From Asterias rubens (lineage: Eukaryota): a stretch of DNA of 64,000 nucleotides. The notes under the pieces were generated by a model. The model made no database searches. It was given only the letters and a program-made list of their open reading frames with translations, and had not been told where the DNA came from. A program made the translations under genes and the position numbers. Location: assembly GCF_902459465.1 (NCBI RefSeq), contig NC_047062.1, positions 558,001 to 622,000 on the forward strand. Direction: 5' to 3'. This document shows, in pieces, positions 1 to 63,312 of this stretch (position 1 is its first letter; every line of letters starts with the position of its first letter).

Positions 1-3000
1 CAGACTATGTTTCAAGGAGCTGGAAAAGTTGTCCTTATAGCAATTGCAATGTAAGTTAATCTCAAAGATTCTTCATCATTTATTGTAAATGGTTTATTCT
101 CTATTTGAGCAATATGTGTTAATATGTGATTTATTTATTTAGTTATATATTTACTTGTCCTCTTTGAAGAAGTTGTGTTAACTCTTTCTTTACCATGGGG
201 GACTTCAACGAGACAGCTTCCATAGCTTGACTGCAACTTATTATCATTGGAGTGATAATAGAGTTTGCAACTTAAGCCTCTAAATACATCATGCAGGCTG
301 TTTTGTAATAACTTATGGATGATACAACAGTTCGGGATCCTCCAAAGAAAGAAGCACAATAAAAGCTTGGAATTACCGGTATGAAGAAGAAGATGAATAA
401 ATGTTCAGTTTGAGTTTTTGGAGGCAAACCCCAAAAGAAGGAAAACACACGTAATTGGTTGGGACTCAATCCACATAAGTTGTGTTCATTGTGGGAGTGG
501 GTCCATAGAGGAGAAGGCAAGGCTAGGAGCCAATATGATCCCTGCTTCAATCTTCTTTTGGGCATAAATCATCTATGTTCTCTTTCTCTTTCAGTAACTC
601 AGCTAATTTCCTGTTCAAGCTGGTAGCCTGGATGTACAGTGGTTCTTCCAGTATGTTTGTAAATCATCTATGTTCTCATTCTCTTTCAGTAACTCAGCTA
701 ATTTCCTGTGCAAGTTGGTAGCCTGGATGTACAGTGGTTTTTCCAGTATGTTTGTAAATCATCTATGTTCTCATTCTCTTTCAGTAACTCAGCTAATTTC
801 CTGTGCAAGTTGGTAGCCTGGCTGTACAGTGGTTCTTCCAGTATGTTTGTAAATCATCTATGTTCTCATTCTCTTTCAGTAACTCGGCTAATTTCCTGTT
901 CAAGCTGGTAGCCTGGATGTACAGTGGTTCTTCCAGTATGTTTGTAAATCATCTATGTTCTCATTCTCTTTCAGTAACTCGGCTAATTTCCTGTTCAAGC
1001 TGGTAGCCTGGATGTACAGTGGTTCTTCCAGTATGTTTGTAAATCATCTATGTTCTCATTCTCTTTCAGTAACTCGGCTAATTTCCTGTTCAAGCTGGTA
1101 GCCTGGATGTACAGTGGTTCTTCCAGTATGTTTGTAAATCATCTATGTTCTCTTTCTCTTTCAGTAACTCAGCTAATTTCCTGTGCAAGTTGGTAGCCTG
1201 GATGTACAGTGGATCTTCCAGTATGTTTGTAAATCATCTATGTTCTCATTCTCTTTCAGTAACTCGGCTAATTTCCTGTGCAAGTTGGTAGCCTGGATGT
1301 ACAGTGGTTCTTCCAGTATGTTTGTAAATCATCTATGTTCTCATTCTCTTTCAGTAACTCGGCTAATTTCCTGTTCAAGTTGGTAGCCTGGATGTACAGT
1401 GGATCTTCCAGTATGTTTGTAAATCATCTATGTTCTCATTCTCTTTCAGTAACTCGGCTAATTTCCTGTGCAAGTTGGTAGCCTGGATGTACAGTGGTTC
1501 TTCCAGTATGTTTGTAAATCATCTATGTTCTCATTCTCTTTCAGTAACTCGGCTAATTTCCTGTTCAAGCTGGTAGCCTGGATGTACAGTGGTTCTTCCA
1601 GTATGTTTGTAAATCATCTATGTTCTCATTCTCTTTCAGTAACTCAGCTAATTTCCTGTTCAAGCTGGTAGCCTGGATGTACAGTGGTTCTTCCAGTATG
1701 TTTGTAAATCATCTATGTTCTCATTCTCTTTCAGTAGCTCAGCTAATTTCCTGTTCAAGCTGGTAGCCTGGATGTACAGTGGATCTTCCAGTATGTTTGT
1801 AAATCATCTATGTTCTCATTCTCTTTCAGTAACTCGGCTAATTTCCTGTTCAAGCTGGTAGCCTGGATGTACAGTGGTTCTTCCAGTATGTTTGTAAATC
1901 ATCTATGTTCTCATTCTCTTTCAGTAACTCAGCTAATTTCCTGTGCAAGTTGGTAGCCTGGATGTACAGTGGTTGTTCCAGTATGTTTGTAAATCATCTA
2001 TGTTCTCTTTCTCTTTCAGTAACTCAGCTAATTTCCTGTGCAAGTTGGTAGCCTGGATGTACAGTGGTTCTTCCAGTATGTTTGTAAATCATCTATGTTC
2101 TCATTCTCTTTCAGTAACTCAGCTAATTTCCTGTTCAAGCTGGTAGCCTGGATGTACAGTGGTTCTTCCAGTATGTTTGTAAATCATCTATGTTCTCTTT
2201 CTCTTTCAGTAACTCAGCTAATTTCCTGTTCAAGCTGGTAGCCTGGATGTACAGTGGTTCTTCCAGTATGTTTGTAAATCATCTATGTTCTCATTCTCTT
2301 TCAGTAACTCAGCTAATTTCCTGTTCAAGCTGGTAGCCTGGATGTACAGTGGTTTTTCCAGTATGTTTGTAAATCATCTATGTTCTCATTCTCTTTCAGT
2401 AACTCAGCTAATTTCCTGTTCAAGCTGGTAGCCTGGATGTACAGTGGTTCTTCCAGTATGTTTGTAAATCATCTATGTTCTCATTCTCTTTCAGTAACTC
2501 AGCTAATTTCCTGTTCAAGCTGGTAGCCTGGATGTACAGTGGTTCTTCCAGTATGTTTGTAAATCATCTATGTTCTCATTCTCTTTCAGTAACTCAGCTA
2601 ATTTCCTGTTCAAGCTGGTAGCCTGGATGTACAGTGGTTCTTCCAGTATGTTTGTAAATCATCTATGTTCTCTTTCTCTTTCAGTAACTCAGCTAATTTC
2701 CTGTGCAAGTTGGTAGCCTGGATGTACAGTGGATCTTCCAGTATGTTTGTAAATCATCTATGTACTCTTTCTCTTTCAGTAACTCGGCTAATTTCCTGTT
2801 CAAGCTGGTAGCCTGGATGTACAGTGGTTCTTCCAGTATGTTTGTAAATCATCTATGTTCTCATTCTCTTTCAGTAACTCAGCTAATTTCCTGTTCAAGC
2901 TGGTAGCCTGGATGTACAGTGGATCTTCCAGTATGTTTGTAAATCATCTATGTTCTCATTCTCTTTCAGTAACTCAGCTAATTTCCTGTTCAAGCTGGTA

Positions 3001-6000
3001 GCCTGGATGTACAGTGGTTCTTCCAGTATGTTTGTAAATCATCTATGTTCTCTTTCTCTTTCAGTAACTCGGCTAATTTCCTGTTCAAGCTGGTAGCCTG
3101 GATGTACAGTGGATCTTCCAGTATGTTTGTAAATCATCTATGTTCTCATTCTCTTTCAGTAACTCAGCTAATTTCCTGTTCAAGCTGGTAGCCTGGATGT
3201 ACAGTGGTTCTTCCAGTATGTTTGTAAATCATCTATGTTCTCATTCTCTTTCAGTAACTCAGCTAATTTCCTGTTCAAGTTGGTAGCCTGGATGTACAGT
3301 GGTTCTTCCAGTATGTTTTCTGAAGCAATTCACTCGGCTGCCGATGTTTGTAATCAGGTCATTCTTGCCTTAGGAATCAGACAGTCCATCAAGAGACCTT
3401 CAGCGGATCATCCGTGAGTTTTCTTTATCACAATATTCAACCAACAATATTTAGGCATAATATTTGAATTACTTTAGTCTGATTTTGTTTGGGAAAACCC
3501 CCAGACAAATTATGAATGATTAAAGTTTCCTATATCATAATATTCAACATAATACTCAACAATATTTAGTCTGATTTCTACAAATTGTGATTAAACAGTA
3601 TAGCCTGGAAAGTTTAATAAAGCCTGTACCATGTGAACATGTAGGTCAGCCCCTGTACTCAATAAAATGTTACTACTTGTTTCCAAGGAAATGCCTGAAT
3701 ATGTTGTCAGTTCAAATATAGGTAACCAAAAGTAGCATGTAAGCAGCACACAAGTTTTAAAGTGCACAAATGTGACATATTTTCTAAATAATTTGGATTT
3801 GCAAATGAAACCAATGCTGAGTAAAGGGGCATATCTCAGAGCTTGCTAAGCTAGTGTATTCTTACAACTCTTAATTTGTATTTGTAACTAAGAGATGTTT
3901 TTAAAAATGCCCAGTGTAGCATCTTGCCTGCTAGAAAAGGTCCTGGAGTGTGCAAGGTTACTCATTTTCTAATGGTAGTCTATTCTGGGTTTTTACAGGT
4001 ATGGATTCAGCAGTATTCGATATGTCTCTTCACTCATCAGCGGAGTCGCCATTTTCTGTATCGGTGCTGGCTTTTCTTGTTACCATGGTTTCATGGGATT
4101 AATCCATCCCGAGCCAATGGAATCTCTCTTCTGGTCATACTGTATTCTGGCTGGATCACTTCTAACAGAGGGAGGTAGGTTTATTTCTGCCACCCAAGAG
4201 GGCCCTCAATTCCTGCTCAATGGTTCTGACACAAGCTGTGGTTCAAGCACAGGTATAAGTTCTTGTTCCTGCTATAGTTTTGGCTCTGGTGCAGGCTGTG
4301 GGTCCTCTTCTGGTTCCAGTTTTTTGTTTCAGTTTTGGCTCTATTGCTGGTTACACCTCTGGTCTAGTGCCGTTTCCAGCTCTGTGAGCCCTAACCACTT
4401 CACATGGTATTTTTAGAACATTTCCATGCATTTATAAGTTCTTGTTCTTGCTATAGTTTTGGCTCTGGTGCAGGCTCTGGGTCCTCTTCTGGTTCCAGTT
4501 TTTATTTCATTTCATTTCATTTTTATTTCATTTTATCACAGCATGCAAAAGAAAGATCTCATTTTCCTTTGTGCCGGTAACTCCTCGAGCCGGGCTACGT
4601 CCCGTAGCCTTAGATCTCAAGGGTCTTTCTCAGGATCCTCGCTGTTCCCAAAAGCGCTGCCTTCTGTAATAGATCTACCCTCACATTTGTCCCTATTTCA
4701 TCTAGATGTTTCCCCAGTGCTTTGGGAATGGTGCCAAGTGCTCCAACCACCACGGGGACTACTTTTACCTTTACCTGCCAAATTATTATTATTAGCTGTT
4801 TCGCTAGCAGCGAAACAGCTCTTGTTTTTGTTAAAGTTTTTGTTATTGTTTTTTATTTTTTTATTTTTTTTATTTGTCTGTTTCAGTACTCGCAATTTTT
4901 TGCATACATGTAGTTCCCAAAGATCAATTGCAATGAAACTTTCAGGGATTGAAGGTTATGGTGCAATAATGATCCTAAAGCAAGGATGTCATGATGACGT
5001 CATCACTGGTCACGTGACGTCATCTTAAAGGTGTTTTATGTTAAATGTTTGAAAATCTATATCAAATCAGCCAAACGAAACCGTAGGTTTCTGTTTGCGG
5101 GATGTGGTAGGGATAAATTAGGTCTTCATTTTGTTTTGTGTGCGTGACCTCACATGACCTCTACTTCTGGTTGAAACGGGCCAAAAACGGAAGTGCCCTG
5201 TAACTCAAAAGTGGTAAAAGTTATGAAGATGCTTTCCAAGGACGTAAGTGTCTAGCAAGGGTGGGCAGTTCAAAAAAAATATTGATGACGTCACAAATTG
5301 CAACAGCGCCCTCTAGCGGCAGGTTGAAAAATCGTCAAAATGGACTTTTTTGAAGATGTGTGTGGTGAAGTTTTTTGTAATCACTTTAAATTTTACACAC
5401 ATGTTTACGGTCAGCCAGCCATCATGCGTGTGAAGTTTCAGATCAATGACGTCATCGGGGGTCACGTGACGTGTCCTCAAAGGTGCACTTTTTGAATTAA
5501 TATAACTCCCTAAGTAATTATGCGATCATGTTGAAACTTGGTAGGTTGGTGGATATTGACAAGTTCTTATGAAATGCGACATGACGTCATGATGACGTCA
5601 TCACATGATTTTTTATGATTTTTTCAATTTTTGCACCTTTAACATATAAATTGCTATCTGAATATGGTATAATCCAAATTATTTTTTTATTTATGCCACA
5701 TTGGGCAAATTGCTTTGAATACCCAACAAATTTAAAACTCAGTTGAGAAATTTGAAATTTTTATTGACGAAACAGCTCTGCATTTGTGCACAAATGCAAT
5801 TTAGCTCTAGTTATTATTATTATTATTATTGTTATTATTATTATTATTATTATTATTTATTTGACCTCAACAAATACCACATTGCCACATTGGAACCCTG
5901 ACTTTTATCTTAAATGATGTGATTTTGTGTTTCAGCTACCTTAATGATTGCCATCAATGCTATTAAGAAAGGAGCTAAAGCTAAACAACAGACCTTCATG

Positions 6001-9000
6001 GAATATGGTAAGTCACTTCAACTCAAGTCATCATCACAATAATCATGATTGCCAAGGAGTCAATGTCCCCGTGTGTTTTACAGTAAAGAGGGCATTTTAC
6101 ATGACACCGTATTTACAAGTTTACCGTCATTTTCGTGTGCAATTTGTGCATTGGTTTGATTAATTTTGCCATACAGGCTCATCACATGGTATTGGTGTGC
6201 ACAGCAGATGCAGATAACAATTGAACCCAACACTATTTCTGTTCTAATTCTATGGTTCAGTATTATTACAAGTCATTGTGCTGCCACCCACCCATCTAAA
6301 GTCTCTCATTACAACCAGTAAAAACTGAGAGATATTTCAATGCATAACAAGTCAACACTATTCCTTTTTTTGTTTCCTCAGTGCTGCGTAGCCGAGACCC
6401 AAGTATCAACGTTGTGTTATTAGAAGATGCAGCTGCAGTATTAGGTGTAATGGTTGCTGCTGGATGTATGGGATTGACATCATACACCGGTAACCCTATG
6501 TATGATGCCATGGGATCCATCGCTATTGGAGCTATCTTAGGTTTGTCTTAAATAAGCTAAGACTCTTTAAGGACTGGTCTGAAGATTTGCCTCAATCTTT
6601 AAATATCAAGTAGTAAACAATAAGGAAAACTGACTGGGTAAATTTAAGTTATTTTAGATAATAATAAAAAAAATTCTTAGATCGGGACTTGAAACAACGA
6701 CATCTGGTTTAGCCTGCTGGTGCTTTACTAACTGACCTATCTAGTCTTGAAACAATGACCTCTGGTTTAGCCTGCTGGTGCTCTACTAACTGACCTATCT
6801 AGTCTTGAAACAATGACATCTGGTTTAGCCTGCTGGTACTCTACTAACTGACCTATCTAGTCTTGAAACAACGACATCTGGTTTAGCCTGCTGGTACTCT
6901 ACTAACTGACCTATCTAGTCTTAATGTTGGCTGTCTCTTTATTTTGCCAATATCTCTTTTCAATCTTAATTTCTAAGCACAGTTTGCATATTATTACAAT
7001 ACAAATCTCTAATGATGATATTGGCAACTCATGCTCAGGTCCATGAATGTTATCATAACTTTACCATTTATTTTGTTGCCAGGATGTGTGTCAGGGTTTT
7101 TAATTTACAGTAACACAGAAGCACTATTGGGCCGCTCCATACCAGAGAGTGAACTGATGAGAATAAGCAGTATGCTGGAAAATGATGTCATGGTCAGGTA
7201 AGCAAATAGATATCAAGTTGTTGTTTTATTAAACCTCGACCCTTTTCGCTGGAAAATGAAGTCTGGAATTTGCCAAACAGCTTAAAAATTGTAACATGAA
7301 TTACCTCAAAGCAGGTATGTAAAAGTCCTATACACTCAGCATTCTCTGGGTTCTATTTTTATGGGAATTTCTGACAATTTGGAAGTTCAACCTTTCATTT
7401 TTACTTTTGATTGAAGAAAATAGAGCTTGGTTTGTGTTGGAATTTGATTGGAGTTGAATTGTATTTTGCCTGATTGTTTCTCTGTTGTTGACATAATAGG
7501 GGTGTTTACGATGTAAAGGCTACAGACATGGGAGTTGATACAATCCGATTCAAGGCAGAGGTTGACTTTGATGGAAGAGAAGTGACAAGATCCTACCTTG
7601 ATGGCCAAGATCTAGAGAGTTTACTACAGGTTAGATAAATAAACACTTTCCATCTAGAGATGGAAGGACACCAGGGTCTACATAACTTTGATTGTGGCTG
7701 CCTGGCCAAACAGTTTAGATCCCAATTTCATTGTTCTGTTTAATGTCGGACTCTGTGCTTACCACCTCCATTCTGTGCTTACCACCTCCATTCTGTGCTT
7801 ACCACCTCCATTCTGTGCTTACCACCTCCATTCTGTGCTTACCACCTCCATTCTGTGCTTACCACCTCCATTCTGTGCTTACCACCTCCATTCTGTGCTT
7901 ACCACCTCCATTCTGTGCTTACCACCTCCATTATGTGCGTACCAACTCCATTATGTGCTTACCGCCTCCATTCTGTGCTTACCGCCTCCATTTTGTGCTT
8001 ACCGCCTCCATTCTGTGCTTACCGCCTCCATTCTGTGCTTACCACCTCCATTCTGTGCTTACCACCTCCATTCTGTGCTTACCACCTCCATTCTGTGCTT
8101 ACCACCTCCATTCTGTGCTTACCACCTCCATTCTGTGCTTACCACCTCCATTCTGTGCTTACCACCTCCATTCTGTGCTTACCACCTCCATTCTGTGCTT
8201 ACCACCTCCATTCTGTGCTTACCATCTCCATTCTGTGCTCACTGTGCAAGTGCCAAATTTCTGATGCATACATACATGCAAAAATTGCTGCTAACCTGTG
8301 AAATGCACTTGACTTAAACCCTGGGCCCAATGTCATGGCTCTGCTTACCGCCGAATTCTGCGCTTACGATCGCGATTCCCCGCTTACGTGCAAGCGCCGA
8401 ATTTCTGTGCTAGCCTTCTAAGCATAGAATGCCTAGTAAGGTGAAGTACGCACGCGCAGAAGCCAAAATTCGCCGCTAACCTGTGAAATACGATTGCCGT
8501 AAGCACAGAATTCCCTGCTTCCGCAAGTGCTGATTCTGTGCTTACGGTAAGCAGAGCCATGAAATTGGGCCCTGATTCTTTGCTTATTGTAAGCAGATGC
8601 ATGAATTGGGCGCCTGTCTTTACTCCACTTGGCACTGGTCTATGTTTTAAAGTTGTATTCAATTCAATTTAATTGTTTTATTGTCACACATATATATACA
8701 TATTCACTTCTGTACCTGAGGATAAAGCAATGCAGAGGTTTGGATGTAGCTATGGGAGCAATAAATTAGCTAATTGCACAAATGGACTGTGCAAGTCTTG
8801 CGTTTACTCGATGTACTTGGGACCAAAGAGGTCACAAAAAATGTCTATAGGTGCGATTTTTACCACTCCTCTGGTGTTTCAACCAGAATTCTGCATTTCT
8901 AGAATTCCTGAAAAAGTGTCTGCAACCTTGCAAACTTTGAAGTGGTATTATCCGCTATTGGATGCCATGCCATATAATAGTTTGATTCTTGCTTTGACTT

Positions 9001-12000
9001 GATAGGAGTTGAAGACTTACACAACGATGGAAGAGATTGAAGGATTCATGTTGAAACATGGAGAGAAGATTATTGATTCACTTGGAGCTGAGGTAGACAG
9101 GATAGAAAAGGAAATCAAGGTAATTATAGTTCTATTATTTCTACTGCATGTATTGATGATAATTACTGAGAGTTTTTTTATTGTTGATATCTGTAGACAA
9201 CTTTTTATTCCAGGAATATTTGAAATGTTATTAGCATGGTTTCCCTTGTAGTCAATAGACGATGTGACCTATGTTTACATTTAAACCGCCCTCTGTTGAC
9301 AAAACACTGTATACGTCATGTTTCGCTGGGCAAAAAGACGCGTAGTCGTGGTAAGATTGCATACACTTTCTAGCTGGCTGCCAAAACACAAAGGTTTTGC
9401 CCGGCGGTATGCGCGCGAATCATGTTATGGTTTTCGAGTGACGTCAGAGGTCACATCGTCTATAGAAGGGGCTGCTTACCTGAAGCAAGTATACTGTTTG
9501 AAACGTCGAGACCAGACCAACTATTTTCAGAGCCAACACTACTCCCAATAGAGGACCAGATTTAGACATTTTTTCATGTCGAGTCACACAAATTGCAAAA
9601 GTTTGTTTTATTGTTGATTCTTGTTTATTGGGTGGTTATTGATGACATATCCAAAATCAGACATGAGTTTCAAGCCAGAAGTGACCTAATTTGCATATTT
9701 AAATTAGGTGGTAATTAGCAATCTTTAAAGTCAATTATCTCTAAAACTATTCATTTTATGGACAAGTTTTGTGTTAGAGGTGAATAGAAACCCGACCCTG
9801 AGAATCTAAAAAACATATTTGTATTCTCGATTGACCCTTTACAAATAACTAGGTCAAAGGTCAAGAGGTTAAACATGGTTTAATTGGTTTTCTCCACTCA
9901 AATGCATTTACATGGCATATCATGACAGTGTAATAAATACCATGAACAAATTCTTCGGGTTGAATGATTCCCCCTGTACCAATTGACTTTTATCAATGAC
10001 ATTCAATGAAATAAAACTCACTCAAATGACCTCTCTAACCAGCTAGGTCAAAGGTAAAGTTGTCAACTTCATGTATTTCAACAATTGACCTGAGCTGGAT
10101 TGTTGTCCCTTTTCTCTTGTAGCAAACCTTTAACATCCCCGCCTCCCCACTGTTGCCTCCTCTTGCCCCCCCCCACTCTTTGTTGCCTATAACGGTTGTT
10201 GCCTCCCCAGTTGTTTGGTCCTAAGTTGTTGCCTCCCCATGTTTGCCTCTCCCCCCCCCCCCCCCCCCCCCCCCCCCCGCCTCCCCAGTTGTTGTCTCCC
10301 CTGTTGTTGCCTCCCGTTGCCAACACTGTTGTTGCCTCCCCTATTTTTGTCTCATCTGATTGTCTCCGTTGTTGCCTCCCCTGTTGTTGACTCCCCTGAT
10401 GTTGCCTCCTCTGATGTTGCCTTGCCTGTTGTAGTCTCTCCTGCTGTTGCCTCCCTTGCTGTTTTCTCCCCTGATTGTCTCCCCTGTTGTTGCTTCCCGT
10501 TATGTTGCCTACCCTGTTGTTGCCTCCCCTGCTTTGGCCCCCTGGTTGTTGCCTCCCCTGTTGTTGCCTCCCCTAGTTTTGCTTCCTCTGATTGTCTCTC
10601 ATGATGTTGCCCCTCCCACGCCCCCCCCTTGTTGTTGCATCACCTGATGTTGCCTCCCCATGTGTCCTCCTCCATGTTGCCTCCCCAGGTAGTACCTCCT
10701 CAGGTATTGCTTCCCCTGCTGGTTCATCCTTCTCTGGTGCCTCCCGTTGTTACCTCCCAACCTGTGCCTCCCTAGTTGTTGCCCCCTGTTGTTGCCAGCC
10801 TGTTGTTGCCTCCCTGTTGTTGCCTCTCTGTTGTTGACTCCCAATGTTGCCTCCTCAGCTGGTACCTTCTCAGGTGCCCCCCCCCCCTGGATCCTCCCAA
10901 CTTGTGCCTCCCTCGTTGTTGCCTCTTCCGATTGTCTCCCCTGAAGTTGCCTCCCGTTGCCTACCATGTTGTTGCCTCCCCTATTTTTGCCTCCCCTGAT
11001 GTCTCCCCTGTTGTTGCCTCCCGTTGGCTACACCCTGTTGGTGCCTCCCCTATTTTTTCCTCCTCTGCTTTGGCCCCTTGTTGTTGCCTCCCCTGATGTT
11101 GCCTCCCAACGTGTCCTCCCCCATGTTGCCTCCCCAGCTGGTACCTCGTCAGGTATGGCTTCCCCCGCTGGTTCATCCTCCTCTAGTGCCTCTCGTTGTT
11201 ACCTTCCCAGGTGGTACCTTCTCAAGTGTCCCCCCCCCCCCCCCCCCGCTGGTTCCTCCCAAACTTGTGTCTCCCTTGCTGCTGACTCTATCGTTTAGAG
11301 CACTGTTAACTATAGTTGTTCTGCGGTCGTCTTCTTCACAAGAATTGTATCATGTAGAGCACCATCCGCTATACGCCTTCCCACTGAGCATAATAGGTGA
11401 CCGTATTTTTACCAGCATAGGTCCTCTCTGCCGTCAATGGTTATTTTGCTATACTTTGGAAACTACCTTGGAGGTTATTAGAGGCTCACGCCCCGGTGTT
11501 TGCTTGACGTCCTTATGTAGTTTAGCTTTATCATAGAACAGACAAAGCCTTTTCTCCTACAACCTGAGTTTCATGACATACCAAACATAAAATCGAGTAC
11601 TTTGGCAAATTTTCTGATACACTCATGCGGATACTAAACCGCAATGAAATTAGCTATGCTGTTTAGGGCACATCGCAACTAAGTGGTCTTTATACATTTG
11701 CTGACACATTGACCTTTGACCTAGATGATGACTATTATAGGTCATTTGGGACAGGGTGGAATCATTCAACCTGAAGAATTAATTAATTATTTGTTACACT
11801 GTTATGGTACCACGTACAATGCATTTGAGTGGAGAAAACCAATTAAACGCATGTTTAACCCCTTACAAATATGTTTTTTAGATTCTCAAGGTCAGGTTTC
11901 TATTCACTTCTAACACAAACCTTGTCCATAAAATGAATAGTTTTAGAGATAATTGACCTTAAAGATTGCTAATTACCACCTAATTTAAATATGCAAATTA

Positions 12001-12422
12001 GGTCACTTCTGGCTTGAAACTCTTGTCCAATTTTGGATATGTTATCAATAACCACCCAATAAACAAGAATCAACAATAAAACAAACTTTTGCAATTTGTG
12101 TGACTCAAAAGTCTAAATCTGGTCCTCTACAATCGAAATTTACACTTGGTTCTACTGGCAAGTTCACTAGTTAAATGAGTTACTTCTTAAGTTCCACAAT
12201 GCAAAGCTTCAAACATCACTTAAACCTTTTGGTTGCATGCACAGTCTAGCACATGGTGAAGTGTACAAAACATTTTGTAGTCGGGGCATGAGACATGAAA
12301 TTGAAAACTCATGAAAAATACCAAGTTACCCAATTTCACTGTTTCATAAAATGTTTTATATTTTGTTTGTATCCTAGACATTGAACCCAGAGGTGCGACA
12401 TGTTGACTTGGAGATCTTATGA
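1..12422 (+). CDS. SLC30A9: Zinc transporter 9 (ZnT9, CDF family), 3' part of gene; 5' exons lie upstream of the window
   Basis: GT-AG exons <1-50, 3255-3413, 3999-4174, 5936-6007, 6382-6540, 7083-7197, 7500-7629, 9006-9119, 12378-12422(TGA) join in frame. They read GAGKVVLIAIAINSANFLFKLVAWMYSGSSSMFSEAIHSAADVCNQ...HPYGFSSIRYVSSLISGVAIF...RDPSINVVLLEDAAAVLG...DVKATDMGVDTIRFKAEVDFDGREVTRSYL...NPEVRHVDLEIL*, matching recalled ZnT9 throughout. Confidence 0.97.
566..3318 (+). repeat. 95-bp tandem array, 29 copies, of SLC30A9 3' splice site plus first 64 nt of exon
   Basis: Acceptor TCTCTTTCAG|TAACTC recurs at 595+95n up to 3255 (n=0-28). Only the last copy continues as TTTTCTGAAGCAATTCAC and reaches the donor at 3414. 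Confidence 0.97.
4500..4780 (-). mobile_element. 5'-truncated non-LTR retrotransposon with RLE-type C-terminus (R4/Dong-like)
   Basis: Minus strand 4780-4610 reads WQVKVKVVPVVVGALGTIPKALGKHLDEIGTNVRVDLLQKAALLGTARILRKTLEI*. It is followed by a short 3' UTR and a (TGAAA)n-like tail, and the truncated end abuts (TAA)n. Confidence 0.75.
4794..5810 (+). mobile_element. Non-autonomous Helentron/Helitron-type element (HINE/DINE-1-like)
   Basis: 5' AGCTGTTTCGCT with adjacent inverted AGCGAAACAGCT (4794-4820). 3' subterminal CGAAACAGCT (5768-5777), perfect palindrome GCATTTGTGCACAAATGC (5780-5797), then CTAG, flanked by (TTA)n. Confidence 0.7.
6684..6960 (-). repeat. Degenerate tRNA-derived SINE with its head amplified as a ~55-bp tandem (x4)
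   Basis: Unit CTTGAAACAACGACATCTGGTTTAGCCTGCTGGTACTCTACTAACTGACCTATCTAGT and its tail resemble the SINE at 26649-27290. Confidence 0.6.
7750..8240. repeat. 20-bp minisatellite (TTCTGTGCTTACCACCTCCA), ~24 copies
   Basis: Direct reading. It shares TTCTGTGCTTAC with the adjacent MITE. Confidence 0.95.
8323..8572. mobile_element. MITE with ~28-bp TIRs
   Basis: GGGCCCAATGTCATGGCTCTGCTTACCG ... CGGTAAGCAGAGCCATGAAATTGGGCCC. Confidence 0.85.
9256..9462. mobile_element. Short MITE
   Basis: TIR TAGACGATGTGACCT ... AGGTCACATCGTCTA. Confidence 0.7.
9549..12129. mobile_element. Non-autonomous long-TIR DNA transposon (Academ-like), copy 1
   Basis: TAGAGGACCAG...CTGGTCCTCTA termini, TIRs over 200 bp, 3-bp TSD CAA (9546-9548 and 12130-12132). 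Interior is degenerate GTTGTTGCCTCCCC repeats with no transposase. Confidence 0.8.
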
Positions 12423-12532
12423 GGTGTGGAATTAGAGTCTGCTGTAATATTGATTGATGTGCAATACATTCTTAAAGGGATAGAGAGACGAAGGGTAGGG
12501 GCATCAGGGTTGGTAAATGGATTATTGTTGGC

Positions 12533-13460
12533 TGGAACCATTATAGGAACCACTGTAAGAACCACTGCAGAAACTACATCAGGAACCATTATATGAACCA
12601 CTGCAGGAACCACTGCAGGAACTACATCAGGAACCATTATAGGAACCACTGCAGGAACCACTGCAGGAACTACATCAGGAACCATTATATGAACCACTGC
12701 AGGAACCACTGCAGGAACTACATCAGGAACCATTATATGAACCACTGCAGGAACCACTGCAGGAACTACATCAGGAACCATTATATGAACCACTGCAGGA
12801 ACCACTGCAGGAACTACATCAGGAACCACTGCAGGAACCACTGCAGGAACTACATCAGGAACCATTATATGAACCACTGCAGGAACCACTGCAGGAACTA
12901 CATCAGGAACCACTGCAGGAACCACTGCAGGAACTACATCAGGAACCATTATATGAACCACTGCAGGAACCACTGCAGGAACTACATCAGGAACCATTAT
13001 ATGAACCACTGCAGGAACCACTGCAGGAACTACATCAGGAACCACTGCAGGAACCACTGCAGGAACTACATCAGGAACCATTATATGAACCACTGCAGGA
13101 ACCACTGCAGGAACTACATCAGGAACCATTATATGAACCACTGCAGGAACCACTGCAGGAACTACATCAGGAACCATTATATGAACCACTGCAGGAACCA
13201 CTGCAGGAACCACTGCAGGAACTACATCAGGAACCATTATATGAAGCACTGCAGGAACCACTGCAGGAACTATTATAGGAACTATTGCAGGAACCACTGC
13301 AGGAACCACATTATATGAACCACTGCAGGAACCACTGCAGGAACCACTGCAGGAACTACATCAGGAACTACATCAGGAACCATTATATGAACCACTGCAG
13401 GAACCACTGCAGGAACTATTATAGGAACTATTGCAGTAACCCCTGCAGGAACCACTACAA
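12533..13460. repeat. 12-bp-unit higher-order tandem array just after the SLC30A9 stop
   Basis: Units GAACCACTGCAG (A), GAACTACATCAG (B), GAACCATTATAT (C), arranged mainly as AABC and AAB. Confidence 0.95.
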
Positions 13461-26014: not shown

Positions 26015-26648
26015 CAGACGGAATGACACACTTAGGTTTTACATTCATTATTTGTTTGCTCTCCGAGTGTCTGTATTAAGCCCTTGCATTGTCCGCCATC
26101 GATGATTAAACTTGCATGAGGCTACCAGTGGCTGAGAGGCATGCACTTTTCCATTGTTTATTATCAAAGGTGGTGGTCAATGATGTCATGTGCAACCCTT
26201 CTATTAAACCAGATCTTTCTCCAGTTGAAAAGTCAACCATTCTTGACCCATCTGATGAAACTATGGCTGCTGTTTTTAACTGAGGCTATTCATTTAAACC
26301 CTATGGACTATTTAGAGGTTTGGTAAAGGTTCATTTTATTAATTGGAGGTTTGATGTCGTCTAACTCTTTGATGAGTTTTAGACATTTGAGAAACAGAAT
26401 AAGCTTATGGAAGCTGTAGAGGTCGTGCTTGCAGCTTACTCGTCTGGCTTTGAACTATGTCACCTCTTTAGTTTGTACAGTTGAAGATGCTAGACCTTGT
26501 TCCAATTTGATGGCTCTGCTTAACGTGTAGTTTGGGGGATATCATCTAGTTATCACCATTCTGTGCTTACTGGGTTAGTGCAAAGTTTCTGTGTTATATG
26601 AAGTATGCACCAGCACAAGAAAAACATATACTTTTTTGGGGTTGATTA

Positions 26649-27290
26649 AAGAATTGACTAGAGTGGGGTTCGAACCAACGAGCTCCGGATTAAAATGCCG
26701 GCGCTCTACCAACTGAGCTACATGTATCTAGCCCTATCCTGGCAGTGTCCCTATTTTGTCAATATTTTTGTTCAGGGGTGCCAGTCAGAAGCCATTGAAC
26801 AGTTAACTGCTGTATAGCCAGGGATCACACCCAAATTATGATACAACCTGGGAAGCGGCAGCCAGGGGATCACCTTAAGGGGATGCGACTTTTTGTTTCA
26901 GATATCAATATAAACCACAAGGGAAACTGACTAGGTAAATTTTGAAATGATTTTTGGGGTTGAACAAAGAATTGACTAGAGTGGGATTCGAACCAACGAC
27001 CTCCGGTTTAACGTGCCGGCGCTCGACCAACTGAGCTATCTAGCCCTATGTTGGCAGTGTCCCTATTATGTCAATATCTTTGTTCAGGGGTGCCAGTCAG
27101 AAGCCATTGAACAGTTAACTGCCGTGTAGCCAGGGATCACACCCAAATTATGATACAACCTGGGAAGCAGCAGCCAGGGGATCACCTTAAGGGGATGCGA
27201 CTTTTTGTTTCAGATATCAATACAAACCACAAGGGAAACTGACTGGGTAAATTTTGAAATGATTATTGGGGTTGAACAAAGAATTTACTA
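26649..27290 (-). mobile_element. tRNA-derived SINE, ~319-bp unit duplicated in tandem
   Basis: Minus strand head GCTAGATAGCTCAGTTGGTCGAGCGCCGGCACGTTAAACCGGAGGTCGTTGGTTCGAATCCCACTCTAGT has A/B boxes and is linked to an identical non-tRNA body in both units. Confidence 0.8.
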
Positions 27291-27334
27291 GATTTACTTA
27301 TGTACATTACGGAACCCATTGCTAAAATACAAGA

Positions 27335-27600
27335 TTCGAACTGCCTCTAGCTACCAGGCAATCTCGGTAGTCTAGTTGGTAAGACACTGCTCTAGAATTG
27401 CAAGGGCCGTGGGTTCGAACTGCCTCTAGCTACCAGGCAATCTTGATAGTCTAGTTGGTAAGACACTGCTCTAGAATTGCAAGGGCCGTGGGTTTGAATC
27501 CCATCCCAGTAATATGCCTGTATTTTCCTTTTCACAGAGCTCTGAAAAGTAGTGAGTAAACATGCCTAACACACATTGGTGTATGTTGGTAAAACCATAA
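27335..27600 (+). mobile_element. Second tRNA-derived SINE family, head duplicated; degenerate relative at ~63720-63850
   Basis: GGTAGTCTAGTTGGTAAGACACTGCTCTAGAATTGCAAGGGCCGTGGGTTCGAA occurs twice. The tail CACACATTGGTGTA is shared with 63817-63830. Confidence 0.7.
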
Positions 27601-57671: not shown

Positions 57672-60600
57672 ATGGAGGATGCGTGGGGAATACTGGCCCT
57701 TTCTTTGGCCATGTTAGTTGGGTGTTTTGTTGCAGGAACAATACCACTCACGGTCCCCCTTTCAGAGGCAAGTAACATTTATAACATATCTTTTTGTATT
57801 GCTCTTGCTCAAAGTCAAGTTGCTCAATTTTGATAAAATATAATACAACTGTATTTGGACTTTTTTGTTTGATGAAGGCCTTTTTAAAAAATCTGTATTT
57901 ATATTACTCTTTGGGGAACCTGTCCGTATCCTGCCACCACTTTTTCACTCATTTCTACAAAAAGAAATATGTTGTTTGATTTTTTCGAGTAAATTTATAT
58001 TTTTATAGATTAGTTAGGCTACTTATTTTAATATATATTTTGATACAAGGCCCTAACTATTTTATTTCTGTCTTTTGACATGGATTTTAAATTGTTTTAT
58101 TATGTCCTTTTCCCGTCGTAACTTCTTGCCCTGTGTTATATAACGCCCAAATTTCCTCCCCCCACGCAGGTTTTTGTGTGTAACATTGTTGTGTTTTCAC
58201 TAAAAATCTGGGTTTTTTTTCAGTGCACATTTCCTTTTTTGTACAAATGCTGTTTTCCTTCCCCAGCCCAGCCCAGTTTATTTCTGACTTAATTAGCTTG
58301 CATTTCTATTGTTTTTCTCTACAGGATTGTTTCTGTTTGGTTTCCTTTTTTGACCATGTTTAACCAAAGTAGTTTTGATATTGAATCCTCCTCTCGAAGG
58401 CCGAGCTGAGGGTTGCATTATCGCCAAATAACCAAAGTTGAGTTCGCTTGTTTCAGGAACTTACAAAACTTTAAGAGAAAGCACTTTTTGGTATCATCTA
58501 GACACGTTCCGGGGACTGCGAGGGTCAAAGACCCGAGCTACAAATAACTTTATTCAAAAAAGCTGCCGGGTTGATCGATTGGGAGTGACAACCATTTCGC
58601 CCATAAGTCAACCCTTTTACAAATCAAACACACACAAAAAGGATCCAGGCTATAATGTAGCTCCTCCTCCTGCATCCACAAAGTGTATCTCGTGTACCTA
58701 TAGAGGACCAGGTTTAAAATTTTGAGTCAAAAAATTGCAAAAGTTTGTTTTATTGTAGATTCTTGTTAAGTGGGTAGTTATTGATGACATATCCAAAATG
58801 GGACAAGAGTTTCAACCCAGAAATGACCGAATTTGCATATTTAAATTAGGTCGTAATTATCAAACTTTAAGGTCAATTATCTCTAAAACTATCAATTTTT
58901 AGGAAAAATGTAGTTTTAGAGGTGAATAGAAACATGACCTTGGGAATCTAAAAAACATTTGTATACTCAAATGACCCTTTCCCAAACAACTAGGTCAAAG
59001 GTCAAGGGGTCAAACATACGTAAAGTTGGTTTTCTCCACTCAAATTCATCATTACATGGCTTCCCATTACATTGAAATTAATAATAAATGAATTATTTGG
59101 GATGAATGATTCCACCCTGTCCCAAATGACCTCTATTGATAACATTCAATAAAATCAAAGAAATTAACAATCAAATTCATCCGACGGAATCGTGGTGCAA
59201 ATGCCTTCTTCTAGTCATTTCCCAAGCGAATAGGTGCAAATTGAACCCATTTATTTTACACAAACATCATGGTATCAATAATCCTCTGGGGCTGGATGGT
59301 TGTACATTTTCTCTGGTAGCAAGCAAAGTTTCACACTGCCCCCCCCCCCCCTCCCGATCATTAGGTTGCATTTCTACATTGCTGTTCCAAACTTGGGCCT
59401 TCAAGTATACCCTGTATGCGTGTTACTTTGAAGCATCATCTGTTGAGTGTGGTCATTGGATTGAGACACTCTTGTGACTCTTTGCCGCCATGTTGAGTGA
59501 CAAATCAAGGTTTATTCTGACATTGGCTGAAAGATTGACTGCAAAAAGGTTTGCACATTATTTTGGTTTCACGTTGCTGATGTGTTGATAATCTGTCGGT
59601 ATGTTTGTCCCTGTGTCCATGGCAAACGTTGAAGACCAGACATTTTGACACACTATTTGATGCGATGCCTGATGACGTCTTAGAGACAGTGATTCTTTTC
59701 AAATGGATTATGGCTTTCTAGGTACTCAAGAATGATTGCTGTCTTTGCCATATTTGATTTAGCTTGTTGCGTTGTTGTAGCTACTCAGCTTCTCCTGCCC
59801 TCCCCTTTTGTTGCCCCCAGTTGATGCCACCCCAGTTGCTGCCTCCCCTGTTGCGCTGCCTCCCCGGTTGTTGCGTCCCTAGTTGTCAACTCCACTTTTG
59901 TTGCCTACCGTTTTGCTGCCTTCCATTTGCTGCCACCCCCATTGCTTCCATCGTTGTTGCCTCCCCAGTTGTTGCTTCTTAAGTTGTTGCCTCCTCGGTT
60001 GTTGCATCCGATGTTGTTGCCTCCCCAGTTGTTGCCTCCCTTGTTGTTGCCTCCACAGTTGTTGCCTCCACAGTTGTTGCCGCCCTAGTTGTTGCCTCCA
60101 CTTTTGTTGCCTCCCCTTTTGCTGCATCCCAGTTGTTGCCTACCCAGTTGCCTCTTCCCTTGTTGCCTCCCGGATCCCCTGTTGTTGCCTCCCCAGTTGT
60201 TGCTTCCCCTGCTGTTGCATTTCTGGGTTGAAACTCTTGTCCCATTTTGGATATGTCATCAATAACCACCCAATAAACAAGAATCAACAATAAAACAAAC
60301 TTTTGCAATTTGTTTGACTCAACATGAATTTTTTTTTCTAAATCTGGTCCTCTACTAGGGGGGTGTCATAATTATAATTTCTAGCAATATTCATATTTTT
60401 GATTTGTTTACATGTAACCTACCAACAACCAAGGAAGACTTCTTCTTTTTCTTTGGTTTTTGTGCCAAAGGACATTTAAAATACTACAACTATTTATGTT
60501 CAAGGCAGTTAAATTATCTTTTTCAGTAAAATTACAAATTGCATATATTCATTTTATACAAATTACATTTGCTTTAAATATTGAACTGTTTGAAACATTT

Positions 60601-63312
60601 AATTTGTTTGAAGGGAATTTGATTAAACCCAGGCTCTTTCTGTACTATTTGTTCTAACAGAGCAAGTTAAGATTTGTGACAGTTCTTGGAGCTGGTCTTC
60701 TTGTTGGAACTGCACTGGCTGTTATTATTCCAGAGGGTGTCCATGCTTTATTTGAAGGAACAGAAGGTAAACCTTGGAATACCAAGTAGCATAGACTTAA
60801 AGTACACTTTAGATGGACAGTAAGAATGCTGAGTTGTGTCAATATCTGAATTAGTTGACTGGGAGGGATGGTTTGAGCCAAAAAGGTACGAGACACACAC
60901 ACACACAGTCATTTTAAGAGACAATTAACAATTAATTGTGGTTGTCCAGTGTATTGTCACTGTCAGTTCGATAAAGTCTTTAATATTAACTAATTAGTTT
61001 TATCTTTAGAAGTCCAAATGTCCCCGACAAGTTTTGTTAAGAAAGACAAATAGTTTTGTAGAGGTGTTTTTTAACCAGTGGAATTTGTGAGCATTACGTT
61101 CCTATTATTATTATTATTATTTTATTTGCCATAACAGTACAAAACAAAATACATTGACAATATACCCCGAGATGGGCAAGGGACGACAAAAGCAAATACA
61201 TACTATGATCTGTAGATCTGTTGCCCCACACCTGGGAGGGTACACAATAAAATTAATATAGATTTAACGTACACAAAGCAATAATAAAAGCAGATAATTA
61301 TACAACCAATAGTAAATAATAAATATCTAATAAGAAAATATTAATTAAAAATCTAATAAGAATAAAAAATTAATTAAAAATAAATAAGTATAAGTAACAG
61401 ATAAGGTAAGGATAAAAAATAAAAGGAAATAAATAATAAAAAGTAAACTTGTAGATCAATTAAAACAGCTTAAAATATTGCACAAGTGATTGGGCTAAAG
61501 CTACTATTCAGTAGATTCATGAGATTGGCAGACAAAAAATGTAAGTGATTTGAGAAAGCTATGATCTACATGTACTCTAATATTCAACCCTTATCAAATC
61601 TATAATACATAGCTGAATAGCTATTTTAATACCATTGTTTGGTATTTAATATTAGAAAACACTTTTGTTTCTAATTTGATATTGCATTGATTTTGTTCAC
61701 CCTCAGACTCCCATGTTCACCGAGGTGTGAATCTCCCAGCAGTAGCTCCAGATGGTCAAGCACTTGTTGCACAACCAGCAGAAGGAAACCCCCCAGAAGC
61801 AAATGGTGACGCCCATCATCATAGTCATGGCAAGAGCAATGAGGAAGAGCTCCATTATGTAATAGGGGTGTCCTTAGTACTGGGGTTTGTTTTTATGCTG
61901 CTTGTGGATCAGATTGGAGGCTCCCATGCTCATTCACATTCACAGATGTCAGGTGAGTTTGCTCAGAAATAAACCATTAGAAATATGTTGCAAAGAATCA
62001 GTTTTTACAGTTGCCAAGTAAATTGACAATTTCTTCTGTATACAGTCTATAAACCCTTGCATATGACGGCAAAAGTCCAAAACAGCGCCCTCGTTGACTT
62101 CTGGTAAAACCTATGATTGGCTGAGAGTTGCGTGCAGCGCTTACACATTGTGCATGGGTGCCATTATCTTACCTCACCGATGGCGATCAATGCAAGGGGT
62201 TCAATTATATTATCAATGTTCTGGTGTTTATTTTTTGTTGTTGTGTTGAGTGCATACAAGTAACATACACTATTATGTATGCATTTACTCTTTAGGAGAA
62301 GGTGAAAATCAAGGGAGAACGAGTCGAGTTGGTTTCACAGCAACGTTAGGATTGGTTGTACATGCAGCAGGTATCGTAGTATTATCTTTTTGGTTATAAA
62401 ACTCTGTAAAATGCCTCGGAACCCCTTGGCATGAAGAGACCTGTGAAGAAAATTTAATAAATAAATGTAGATTTTCACTGTTCATGATACTAATCTTTTT
62501 TGGGACATGCCATATATTTTGTGGGTGAATTTATTGAAACGTTTGAGCCAATTTCTGTTAAAAATAACACATTTCTTACCATTTTTACTTTCAAACTTTC
62601 TATCAAAAGAAACTTGTGAATCAGAATTCATCACATTCTGCTAAGCGAAACGTAACTGTGCTAGGCTAATTTCAAGTTCTATGCAGCTCTGTGAAATTAA
62701 CACCTGTGTAAAGTTGTGGGTTTTAATGTTTTGTTGTTGTTTATTTCTTGCCAGCGGATGGAATTGCTATGGGAGCTGCAGCAATGGGTCGTACAGATGT
62801 TCAAATGATTGTATTTGTTGCCGTTATGCTGTTGTTTATTTCTTGCCAGCGGATGGAATTGCTATGGGAGCTGCAGCAATGGGTCGTACAGATGTTCAAA
62901 TGATTGTATTTGTTGCCATTATGCTGTTGTTTATTTCTTGCCAGCGGATGGAATTGCTATGGGAGCTGCAGCAATGGGTCGTACAGATGTTCAAATGATT
63001 GTATTTATTGCCATTATGCTGTTGTTTATTTCTTGCCAGCGGATGGAATTGCTATGGGAACTGCAGCAATGGGTTGTACAGATGTTTAAATGATTGTATT
63101 TATTGCCATTATGCTGTTGTTTATTTCTTGCCAGCGGATGGAATTGCTATGGGAGCTGCAGCAATGGGTCGTACAGATGTTCAAATGATTGTATTTATTG
63201 CCATTATGCTGTTGTTTATTTCTTGCCAGCGGATGGAATTGCTATGGGAGCTGCAGCAATGGGTCGTACAGATGTTCAAATGATTGTATTTGTTGCCATT
63301 ATGCTTCACAAG
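57672..63312 (+). CDS. SLC39A9: Zinc transporter ZIP9, 5' part; continues beyond the window
   Basis: Exons 57672-57767 (GC donor), 60661-60766, 61707-61952, 62296-62370, 63230-63312. They read [102 protein letters not shown]. Confidence 0.97.
58701..60354. mobile_element. Non-autonomous long-TIR DNA transposon (Academ-like), copy 2
   Basis: TAGAGGACCAG...CTGGTCCTCTA, 3-bp TSD CTA (58698-58700, 60355-60357). Same TIR family and GTTGTTGCCTCCCC interior as 9549-12129. Confidence 0.8.
61098..61560 (-). mobile_element. Probable LINE 3' tail ending in (TAA)n
   Basis: A-rich tract and (TTA)n at 61103-61120, plus a short decayed coding-like stretch. Assignment is loose. Confidence 0.4.
62736..63305 (+). 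repeat. 95-bp tandem x6 of SLC39A9 acceptor plus first 76 nt of exon
   Basis: GTTGTTTATTTCTTGCCAG|CGGATGGAATTGCTATGG... at 62755+95n up to 63230. Only the last copy continues CTTCACAAG|GTAAG. Confidence 0.97.

Follow-up and report, generated by a model that had tools for sequence, protein, structure and literature searches.

Mirage minisatellites are tandem repeats in which each unit reaches across an exon-intron boundary. They have been described in amphioxus, in Adh3, the globins BflGb6/BflGb9, troponin C and PGBD5 (PMC3087553; PMC3902484); the original report (pmid 12087171, PMC117041) is referred to here as cited in PMC3087553. In these genes splice signals and a piece of the exon are multiplied, the authentic site adjoins the exon remainder, 5' and 3' boundaries can both be affected, and the copies share a mosaic of variants typical of tandem-repeat turnover (PMC3087553; PMC3902484). 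Splicing is reported to be undisturbed, with regular products in RT-PCR (PMC3087553). A related situation exists in human F7. The first element of a 37-bp minisatellite in intron 7 spans the exon-intron boundary, which results in a row of identical functional donors, of which the exon-proximal one alone is used (PMC1557585); this minisatellite has served for studies of 5' splice-site choice. Duplication of AG/GT segments is also the basis of the Rogers model of intron gain (Hellsten et al. 2011, PMC3265369), and intron gain by tandem duplication has been discussed for mirages (PMC3087553).

We analyzed a 64,000-nucleotide stretch of sea-star DNA (the window), in which a 3' splice site of the ZnT9 gene lies in a tandem array. 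The array shares its architecture and its mosaic of variants with the amphioxus mirages. However, it occurs in another phylum, in an asteroid echinoderm, and with 29 copies in 2.75 kb it is much larger than the arrays of the amphioxus globins (2-6 copies). Whereas the amphioxus genes were seen by RT-PCR to splice normally, the ZnT9 array is known from sequence and contigs. A literature search found no description of echinoderm mirages, and the array extends this class from cephalochordates to echinoderms. Mirage arrays can break gene prediction, and annotators of such genomes should expect them.

The ZnT9 array mirrors the F7 minisatellite with opposite polarity. In F7 it is the donor that is multiplied, and the upstream-most site wins; in ZnT9 it is the acceptor, and the downstream-most site has to win. 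Scanning from 5' to 3', as proposed for F7, would end at the wrong site in ZnT9, and thus simple scanning cannot explain both. Either a different rule or a common rule, "exon-proximal wins", is needed. As in the Rogers model, extra splice signals arise and duplicated sequence would be removed as intron. In contrast to that model, the ZnT9 copies only add length to an intron that was already present, and at 31 nt the gaps between them are too short for introns.

The ZnT9 gene and its 95-bp array

Table 1. Features of the ZnT9 locus (window coordinates)
Feature	Position	Strand	Basis
Upstream ZnT9 exon, 3' end, cut by window start; donor AAT/GTAAGT at 50/51	1..50	+	tblastn to Diadema and Patiria SLC30A9
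Native non-repeated intron part, upstream of the array	51..563	+	Sequence reading; no repeat reported there
Mirage minisatellite, 95 bp x 29, head-to-tail	564..3318	+	Tandem Repeats Finder, in-register slicing, pattern match
28 decoy exon heads, first base 595 + 95k (k = 0-27)	595..3223	+	Each behind pyrimidine tract and CAG
Authentic ZnT9 exon, 159 nt; donor TCC/GTGAGT	3255..3413	+	Pfam PF01545, Patiria exon, RNA contig
Following ZnT9 exon	3999..4174	+	RNA contig joint 3413 to 3999; alignment to orthologue
Six remaining ZnT9 exons, all GT-AG	5936..12422	+	Gap-free alignment to Patiria SLC30A9
Exons of the preceding row (the last with stop)	5936-6007, 6382-6540, 7083-7197, 7500-7629, 9006-9119, 12378-12422	+	ZnT9 gene model

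Judged by homology, the gene is SLC30A9/ZnT9, a cation diffusion facilitator. Pfam Cation_efflux (PF01545) matched two of its exons with E values of 8e-13 and 1.1e-6, and both matches pass the curated cut-off. The nine GT-AG exons that lie in the window are predicted to give a product of 339 aa, and acceptor 3255 alone yields this open frame. Against Patiria miniata SLC30A9 the model aligned gap-free over residues 236-574, with ~88% identity; the Patiria protein is annotated "zinc transporter 9-like". Joining exon 1-50 in frame to 3255 reads ...AIAI/NSANF..., as in the orthologues. The exon behind acceptor 3255 encodes the start of the cation-efflux transmembrane domain, and its first 64 nt belong to array copy 29. 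The original prediction of an SLC30A9 exon was therefore supported (Pfam E 8e-13, ~88% gap-free identity). As read from the frame, the locus is intact only via acceptor 29.

The array itself was detected by Tandem Repeats Finder with a period of 95, 29.0 copies, 97% matches, 0% indels and a score of 5179 (reported at 565-3318; best phase 564-3318). This agrees with the exact 95-bp periodicity that had been claimed from 595 to 3255. The predicted array and exon structure also held, with small corrections, among them the extents of the array (564-3318) and of the exon (3255-3413). Each unit consists of 31 nt of intron tail, i.e., a pyrimidine tract and CAG, followed by 64 nt of ZnT9 exon head; this composition had been proposed and was seen in every copy. 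The native upstream intron adjoins copy 1, again as predicted. A 45-nt piece of the unit had 29 matches in the window, all of them inside the array, and none in 100 shuffles.

Sliced in register, the copies differ from the consensus by 0-4 letters each. Nine variable sites form a non-periodic mosaic in exact 95-bp register without indels, and the variants return in mosaic combinations in copies that are not neighbours. At the copy junction, copy 1 has the base A and copies 2-29 have G, and the combination of variants in copy 29 is unique among the copies. The array has thus undergone concerted evolution within itself, with the edge copies (1 and 29) set apart. It is a head-to-tail minisatellite, its unit spans an exon-intron boundary with a splice signal, and the authentic copy adjoins the exon remainder. 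The array is therefore real and a member of the described class of mirage minisatellites; the evidence so far does not make it a new mechanism. A coding array was considered and rejected: the period of 95 is not divisible by 3, and neither strand has a stretch of more than 81 aa free of stops. No Rfam family was found in window positions 1-13000.

The orthologous junction in Patiria shares the intron position and phase, and the exon there is also 159 nt long. This junction is single copy, and no tandem repeat lies across it. The exon part of the unit is identical to the start of the Patiria exon at 55/64 positions.

Decoy acceptors

Acceptors of the form CAG/TAACTC lie at 595 + 95k, the last one at 3255. 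The original prediction had spoken of 28 near-perfect decoys, and indeed 21/28 match the real acceptor in every one of the 31 intron letters; the remaining seven differ by 1-2. Behind each decoy stand 64 exon letters and then the pseudo-donor TTT/GTAAAT, which matches the CAG/GTAAGT consensus at 5/9 positions; the eight real donors that the window contains each match at 6-7/9. The 64-nt unit taken as a pseudo-exon would lead to an immediate TAA, and splicing to any of the 28 decoys to a stop 42 codons past the junction. The donor at 3413/3414 is reached in frame only from copy 29, which agrees with the earlier claim. The 31-nt spacers had been considered too short for normal splicing, and the shortest real intron of ZnT9 in the window measures 302 nt. 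With 28 complete upstream acceptors, mostly identical to the real one, the locus is a natural experiment on 3' splice-site choice.

Two further readings were examined and rejected. Masking by RNA structure did not separate the sites: the predicted unpaired probability was 0.61 for the real acceptor and 0.55-0.79 for decoys 21-28. Recursive splicing did not fit either, as TAAC and not GT stands directly 3' of the acceptors.

The decoys could instead be leaky, either the last few or the first, and act as a dosage brake, with early-stop transcripts being degraded and ZnT9 output lowered or tuned. We consider this unlikely. Every decoy is a complete acceptor, most of them identical to the real one, and elsewhere in the window another zinc-transporter-like exon has a 95-bp acceptor array as well. 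However, Patiria is without the array, which is thus not a conserved device, and for the same reason the array does not qualify as a regulated poison-exon or decay-coupled switch. The variants of the decoy copies are also unconstrained, five being amino-acid-changing and three silent; an amino-acid-changing variant is present in 10/28 decoys. Finally, the amphioxus mirages were spliced regularly when assayed by RT-PCR (PMC3087553).

RNA and DNA contigs

The sequencing evidence consisted of assembled contigs, which cannot span 2.7 kb of repeat, and covered window positions 2275-6000. In the RNA run X1, a 1,284-nt contig with a depth of 29.7 covers 3289-3413 joined to 3999-4172. The locus is thus transcribed, and it is spliced downstream of the array from 3413 to 3999. 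As far as testable, this contradicts an untranscribed duplicate. The contig ends at 3289, and 31 letters further on comes the first base to depart from the repeat. An assembly graph built from 31-letter words should break there, provided that the library also contains the junction between copies. Record 16 of the DNA contigs of run X19 begins at the same base.

In the DNA-type runs X19 and X12, array bins had depths of 2,700-11,000 and 50-530, compared with ~135 in the single-copy flanks of X19 and ~9-49 in the flanks of X12; these are contig depths and not copy numbers. Array words were thus many-fold deeper than the flanks in independent runs, which speaks against a single copy as far as this can be tested. 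The number 29 itself comes from one assembly. It might have been over- or under-called although the repeat is real, given that assembled contigs cannot span it. We regard this as scarcely probable: a non-periodic mosaic of nine sites in 95-bp register without indels would be unusual for collapse or stutter artefacts, and in X19 the depth of the array contigs is tens of times that of the flanks.

It is also highly improbable, in our view, that the array marks a null or crippled allele, which would be mis-spliced and heterozygous, with functional mRNA derived from a single-copy allele or another locus. The length of such minisatellites differs between haplotypes in amphioxus (PMC3087553), and the X1 RNA contig cannot reveal its allele of origin. 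However, signs of the array appeared in three differently labelled samples (the break at 3289 in X1 and X19, the raised depth in X19 and X12), and all nine exons are intact and conserved.

In the X1 RNA, two array bins had depths of 26.8 and 34.7, near that of the exon contig, and the single-copy intron bins had 0. This comparable depth is the point of the RNA data in favour of a dosage brake. It fits rare pre-mRNA multiplied by ~29 copies and is just as compatible with the last few decoys being used to an appreciable extent. No decoy-spliced RNA was found among the assembled contigs, which could not exclude such RNA. No RNA contig across the 50/3255 junction was seen, and metagenome contigs, when scanned for exact matches to this spliced junction, gave 0. 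Searches of protein collections with the Diadema and Patiria proteins found no transcripts or gene models of the same species; the closest were from Patiria.

Probable origin of the array and proposed choice of the last acceptor

We favour, with a probability of about 0.7, a lineage-specific mirage minisatellite in which the last acceptor is chosen by exon definition and the array is tolerated as near-neutral. It probably started when 95 bp across the 3' splice site of the ZnT9 exon were duplicated in tandem. Slippage or unequal exchange would then have expanded it to 29 copies, lengthening the intron by 2,660 nt. A tandem duplication spanning the junction always keeps one splice site next to the intact exon remainder, so the gene stays functional as long as the exon-proximal, i.e., last, acceptor is chosen.

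Reading frame and conservation suggest that acceptor 29 is used exclusively or predominantly. Exon definition would be the probable means by which the decoys are bypassed. The last acceptor alone sits 159 nt upstream of a good donor, TCC/GTGAGT. The decoys have only TTT/GTAAAT after 64 nt, followed by a 31-nt gap, and would therefore be passed over, as other pseudo-acceptors in introns are. If acceptors were taken first come, first served (intron definition), decoy 1 would be favoured, contrary to choice of the last acceptor. Any leaky use of decoys would give early-stop mRNA, which should be degraded. The array appears to be neutral, and most likely it is a near-neutral by-product of a minisatellite-rich genome rather than a regulatory device.

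A wider reading, that splice-junction minisatellites are far commoner in the sea-star genome than random seeding allows, seems to us very unlikely. If true, such an excess would imply duplication targeted to exon edges, or decoy arrays that set splicing efficiency genome-wide. Among such arrays the one in ZnT9, with its 29 acceptors, would then be the extreme, and a natural system for testing how splicing distinguishes between identical 3' splice sites. A common mobile element as the source of the ZnT9 array and the other 95-bp array in the window was rejected, as their units aligned with a score of 12 compared with a shuffle mean of 9.7 and a maximum of 16. Within the 64-kb window, at least three, perhaps five, genes carry a splice-junction minisatellite.

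Structure of the ZnT9 array

Inspection of window positions 1-3900 together with Tandem Repeats Finder revealed a single array at 565-3318 (best phasing 564-3318) with a period of 95 bp, 29.0 copies, 97% matches and no indels. When the array was sliced in register, the copies departed from the consensus at 0-4 positions each. A 45-nt fragment of the unit gave 29 matches, every one inside the array; the chance expectation is 0. The original prediction, an SLC30A9 exon preceded by 28 near-perfect decoy 3' splice sites, is thus borne out as an observation.

Each unit begins with 31 letters of intron, the last of them forming a pyrimidine tract and CAG, and continues with 64 letters of exon. In 21 of the 28 upstream copies, the whole intron part is the same as at the real acceptor, number 29. 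Copy 1 starts with A, the base native to the intron, and copies 2-29 start with G. Therefore, all internal copy junctions read TTT/GTAAAT. Variants of the array reappear in mosaic combinations among non-adjacent copies, and the edge copies are distinct.

The exon behind the last copy matches Pfam Cation_efflux (E 8e-13, exceeding the curated cut-off), and an exhaustive search with 52 residues of this exon returned SLC30A9/ZnT9 proteins. By tblastn, the protein nearest to the window is that of the sea star Patiria miniata (85%), which places the window in an asteroid echinoderm. Using the Patiria and Diadema proteins as guides, we placed nine exons in the window, with GT-AG borders throughout. 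Spliced together they encode 339 residues, which form a gap-free alignment with residues 236-574 of the Patiria protein and share its stop position. In a public collection, the ZnT9-like protein P0001 (440 aa) carries the segment around the array-side exon twice, apparently through a duplication introduced by the gene model or the assembly of another animal.

Exons of the ZnT9 gene model and further tandem arrays in the window
Feature	Position	Description
ZnT9 exon	1-50	
ZnT9 exon	3255-3413	
ZnT9 exon	3999-4174	
ZnT9 exon	5936-6007	
ZnT9 exon	6382-6540	
ZnT9 exon	7083-7197	
ZnT9 exon	7500-7629	
ZnT9 exon	9006-9119	
ZnT9 exon	12378-12422	
95-bp x 6.0 array	62735-63305	98% identity; over acceptor of ZIP-like exon (63230-63312)
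53-bp x 7.0 array	42549-42919	100% identical; donor-side, unit with TTGAG/GTAAGT
62-bp x 11 array	48055-48740	minus strand reads …GAATACCAG/GTAAGC (CAG/GTAAGC)

Decoy acceptors and the proposed choice of acceptor 29

Splicing of donor 50/51 to any of acceptors 1-28 in silico resulted in all cases in a stop 42 codons past the junction. Read as a small exon, the 64-nt part of the unit leads to TAA at once, and no open frame runs through the whole array on either strand. Only acceptor 29 yielded the ZnT9 reading frame. Usually, AG is absent between a branch point and its acceptor. Since the nearest upstream AG of every acceptor falls within the unit, the branch point of the real acceptor must also fall within the repeated unit. 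The decoys are thus complete 3' splice sites and more than stray AGs. The structural interpretation made at first reading, of a ZnT9 exon with near-perfect decoy acceptors and a single one in frame, was supported.

Acceptor 29 is not distinguishable from its neighbours by local sequence, and predicted RNA accessibility was equal for it and the neighbouring decoys. The difference lies downstream. A distance of 159 nt separates acceptor 29 from TCC/GTGAGT, whereas from each decoy it is 64 nt to TTT/GTAAAT, which fits the donor consensus less well than any other donor of the gene in the window. The gap behind each of these weak motifs is 31 nt, and the shortest real intron of the gene in the window is ten times longer. 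Based on this downstream difference, we propose exon definition, in which the good donor would pair with the closest upstream acceptor and the remaining array would be handled as intron. A single rule, that the exon-proximal copy wins, could then apply to donor- and acceptor-side arrays. Likewise, in the donor minisatellite of human F7 the donor adjoining the exon is the sole site used, though the others are functional (PMC1557585).

Representation in sequencing runs

All runs were analyzed as assembled contigs, which were compared with window positions 2275-6000. In the RNA run X1, a 1,284-nt contig (depth 29.7) spans 3289-3413 and then 3999-4172. This join demonstrates transcription from the ZnT9 locus, or from an identical one, and use of donor 3413/3414. 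The contig stops at 3289, exactly 31 letters short of the first non-repeat base, 3319, and an 846-nt contig of the DNA run X19 begins at 3289 too. Such contigs come from a graph of 31-letter words. Therefore, a break at 3289 is expected if the library holds both a copy-to-copy junction and the exit into the unique exon.

Array contigs reached a summed word depth of 2,700-11,000 in X19, compared with about 135 alongside, and of 50-530 in a further run, X12, compared with about 9-49; these depths are not copy numbers and were taken solely as evidence of a multi-copy unit in samples with three different organism labels. In X1, two array bins had depths of 26.8 and 34.7 and the single-copy intron bins 0. 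This is compatible with a low level of unspliced RNA in which the unit is present many times over, and some decoys may also be used. The spliced 50 to 3255 junction gave 0 matches in the metagenome scan, and no same-species transcript was found in the protein collections.

Lineage-specific origin and other repeats of the window

At the Patiria locus, the phase at the end of the upstream exon is that of its A. rubens counterpart. The orthologous exon has the same length of 159 nt, and over the first 64 of these, 55 positions are identical to the exon part of the unit. No tandem repeat covers the junction at this locus, where the copy number is one. Thus the array is a lineage-specific expansion, which enlarged the ZnT9 intron by 2,660 nt, from 544 nt.

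Tandem repeats across exon-intron boundaries were named "mirages" for amphioxus Adh3 (PMC3087553). In amphioxus, globins, troponin C and PGBD5 provide further cases; regular splicing proved undisturbed by RT-PCR, and copy number varied among haplotypes (PMC3087553; PMC3902484). The ZnT9 array shares the structural features of this class, and no paper on mirages in echinoderms was found in the literature searched. We conclude that the array is real, belongs to a known class, is unusually large for it and extends it to a new phylum. Most probably, minisatellite turnover produced it as a by-product that is tolerated. The array is a useful natural model of acceptor choice and gives no evidence for a new mechanism.

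Two more splice-junction arrays were confirmed in the window, the one at the ZIP-like exon and the 53-bp array. The unit of the former consists of 20 nt of intron tail (…TTCTTGCCAG) and 75 nt of exon, and shows no sequence relationship with the ZnT9 unit. Its final copy continues into CACAAG/GTAAGT. The 27 residues of the ZIP-like exon match Pfam Zip weakly (E 0.03, under the cut-off) and resemble ZIP9. The 62-bp array may be a fourth: on the minus strand, an open frame following an AG precedes its GTAAGC donor motif.

Other repeats were also observed. The ZnT9 intronic stretch 4525-5900 had word depths between 10^5 and almost 10^6 in DNA runs, compared with about 135 in single-copy flanks, and was found in RNA runs as well. 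The stretch is a dispersed repeat of very high copy number and presumably represents a transposable element. A degenerate 15-bp unit (GCCTCCCCAGTTGTT) is arrayed at two distant sites, 10279-11137 in the last ZnT9 intron and 59799-60218. The units of the tandem arrays at 6688-6922 and 26633-27498 look tRNA-derived (e.g. GGATTCGAACC…), which suggests SINE-like elements turned minisatellites.
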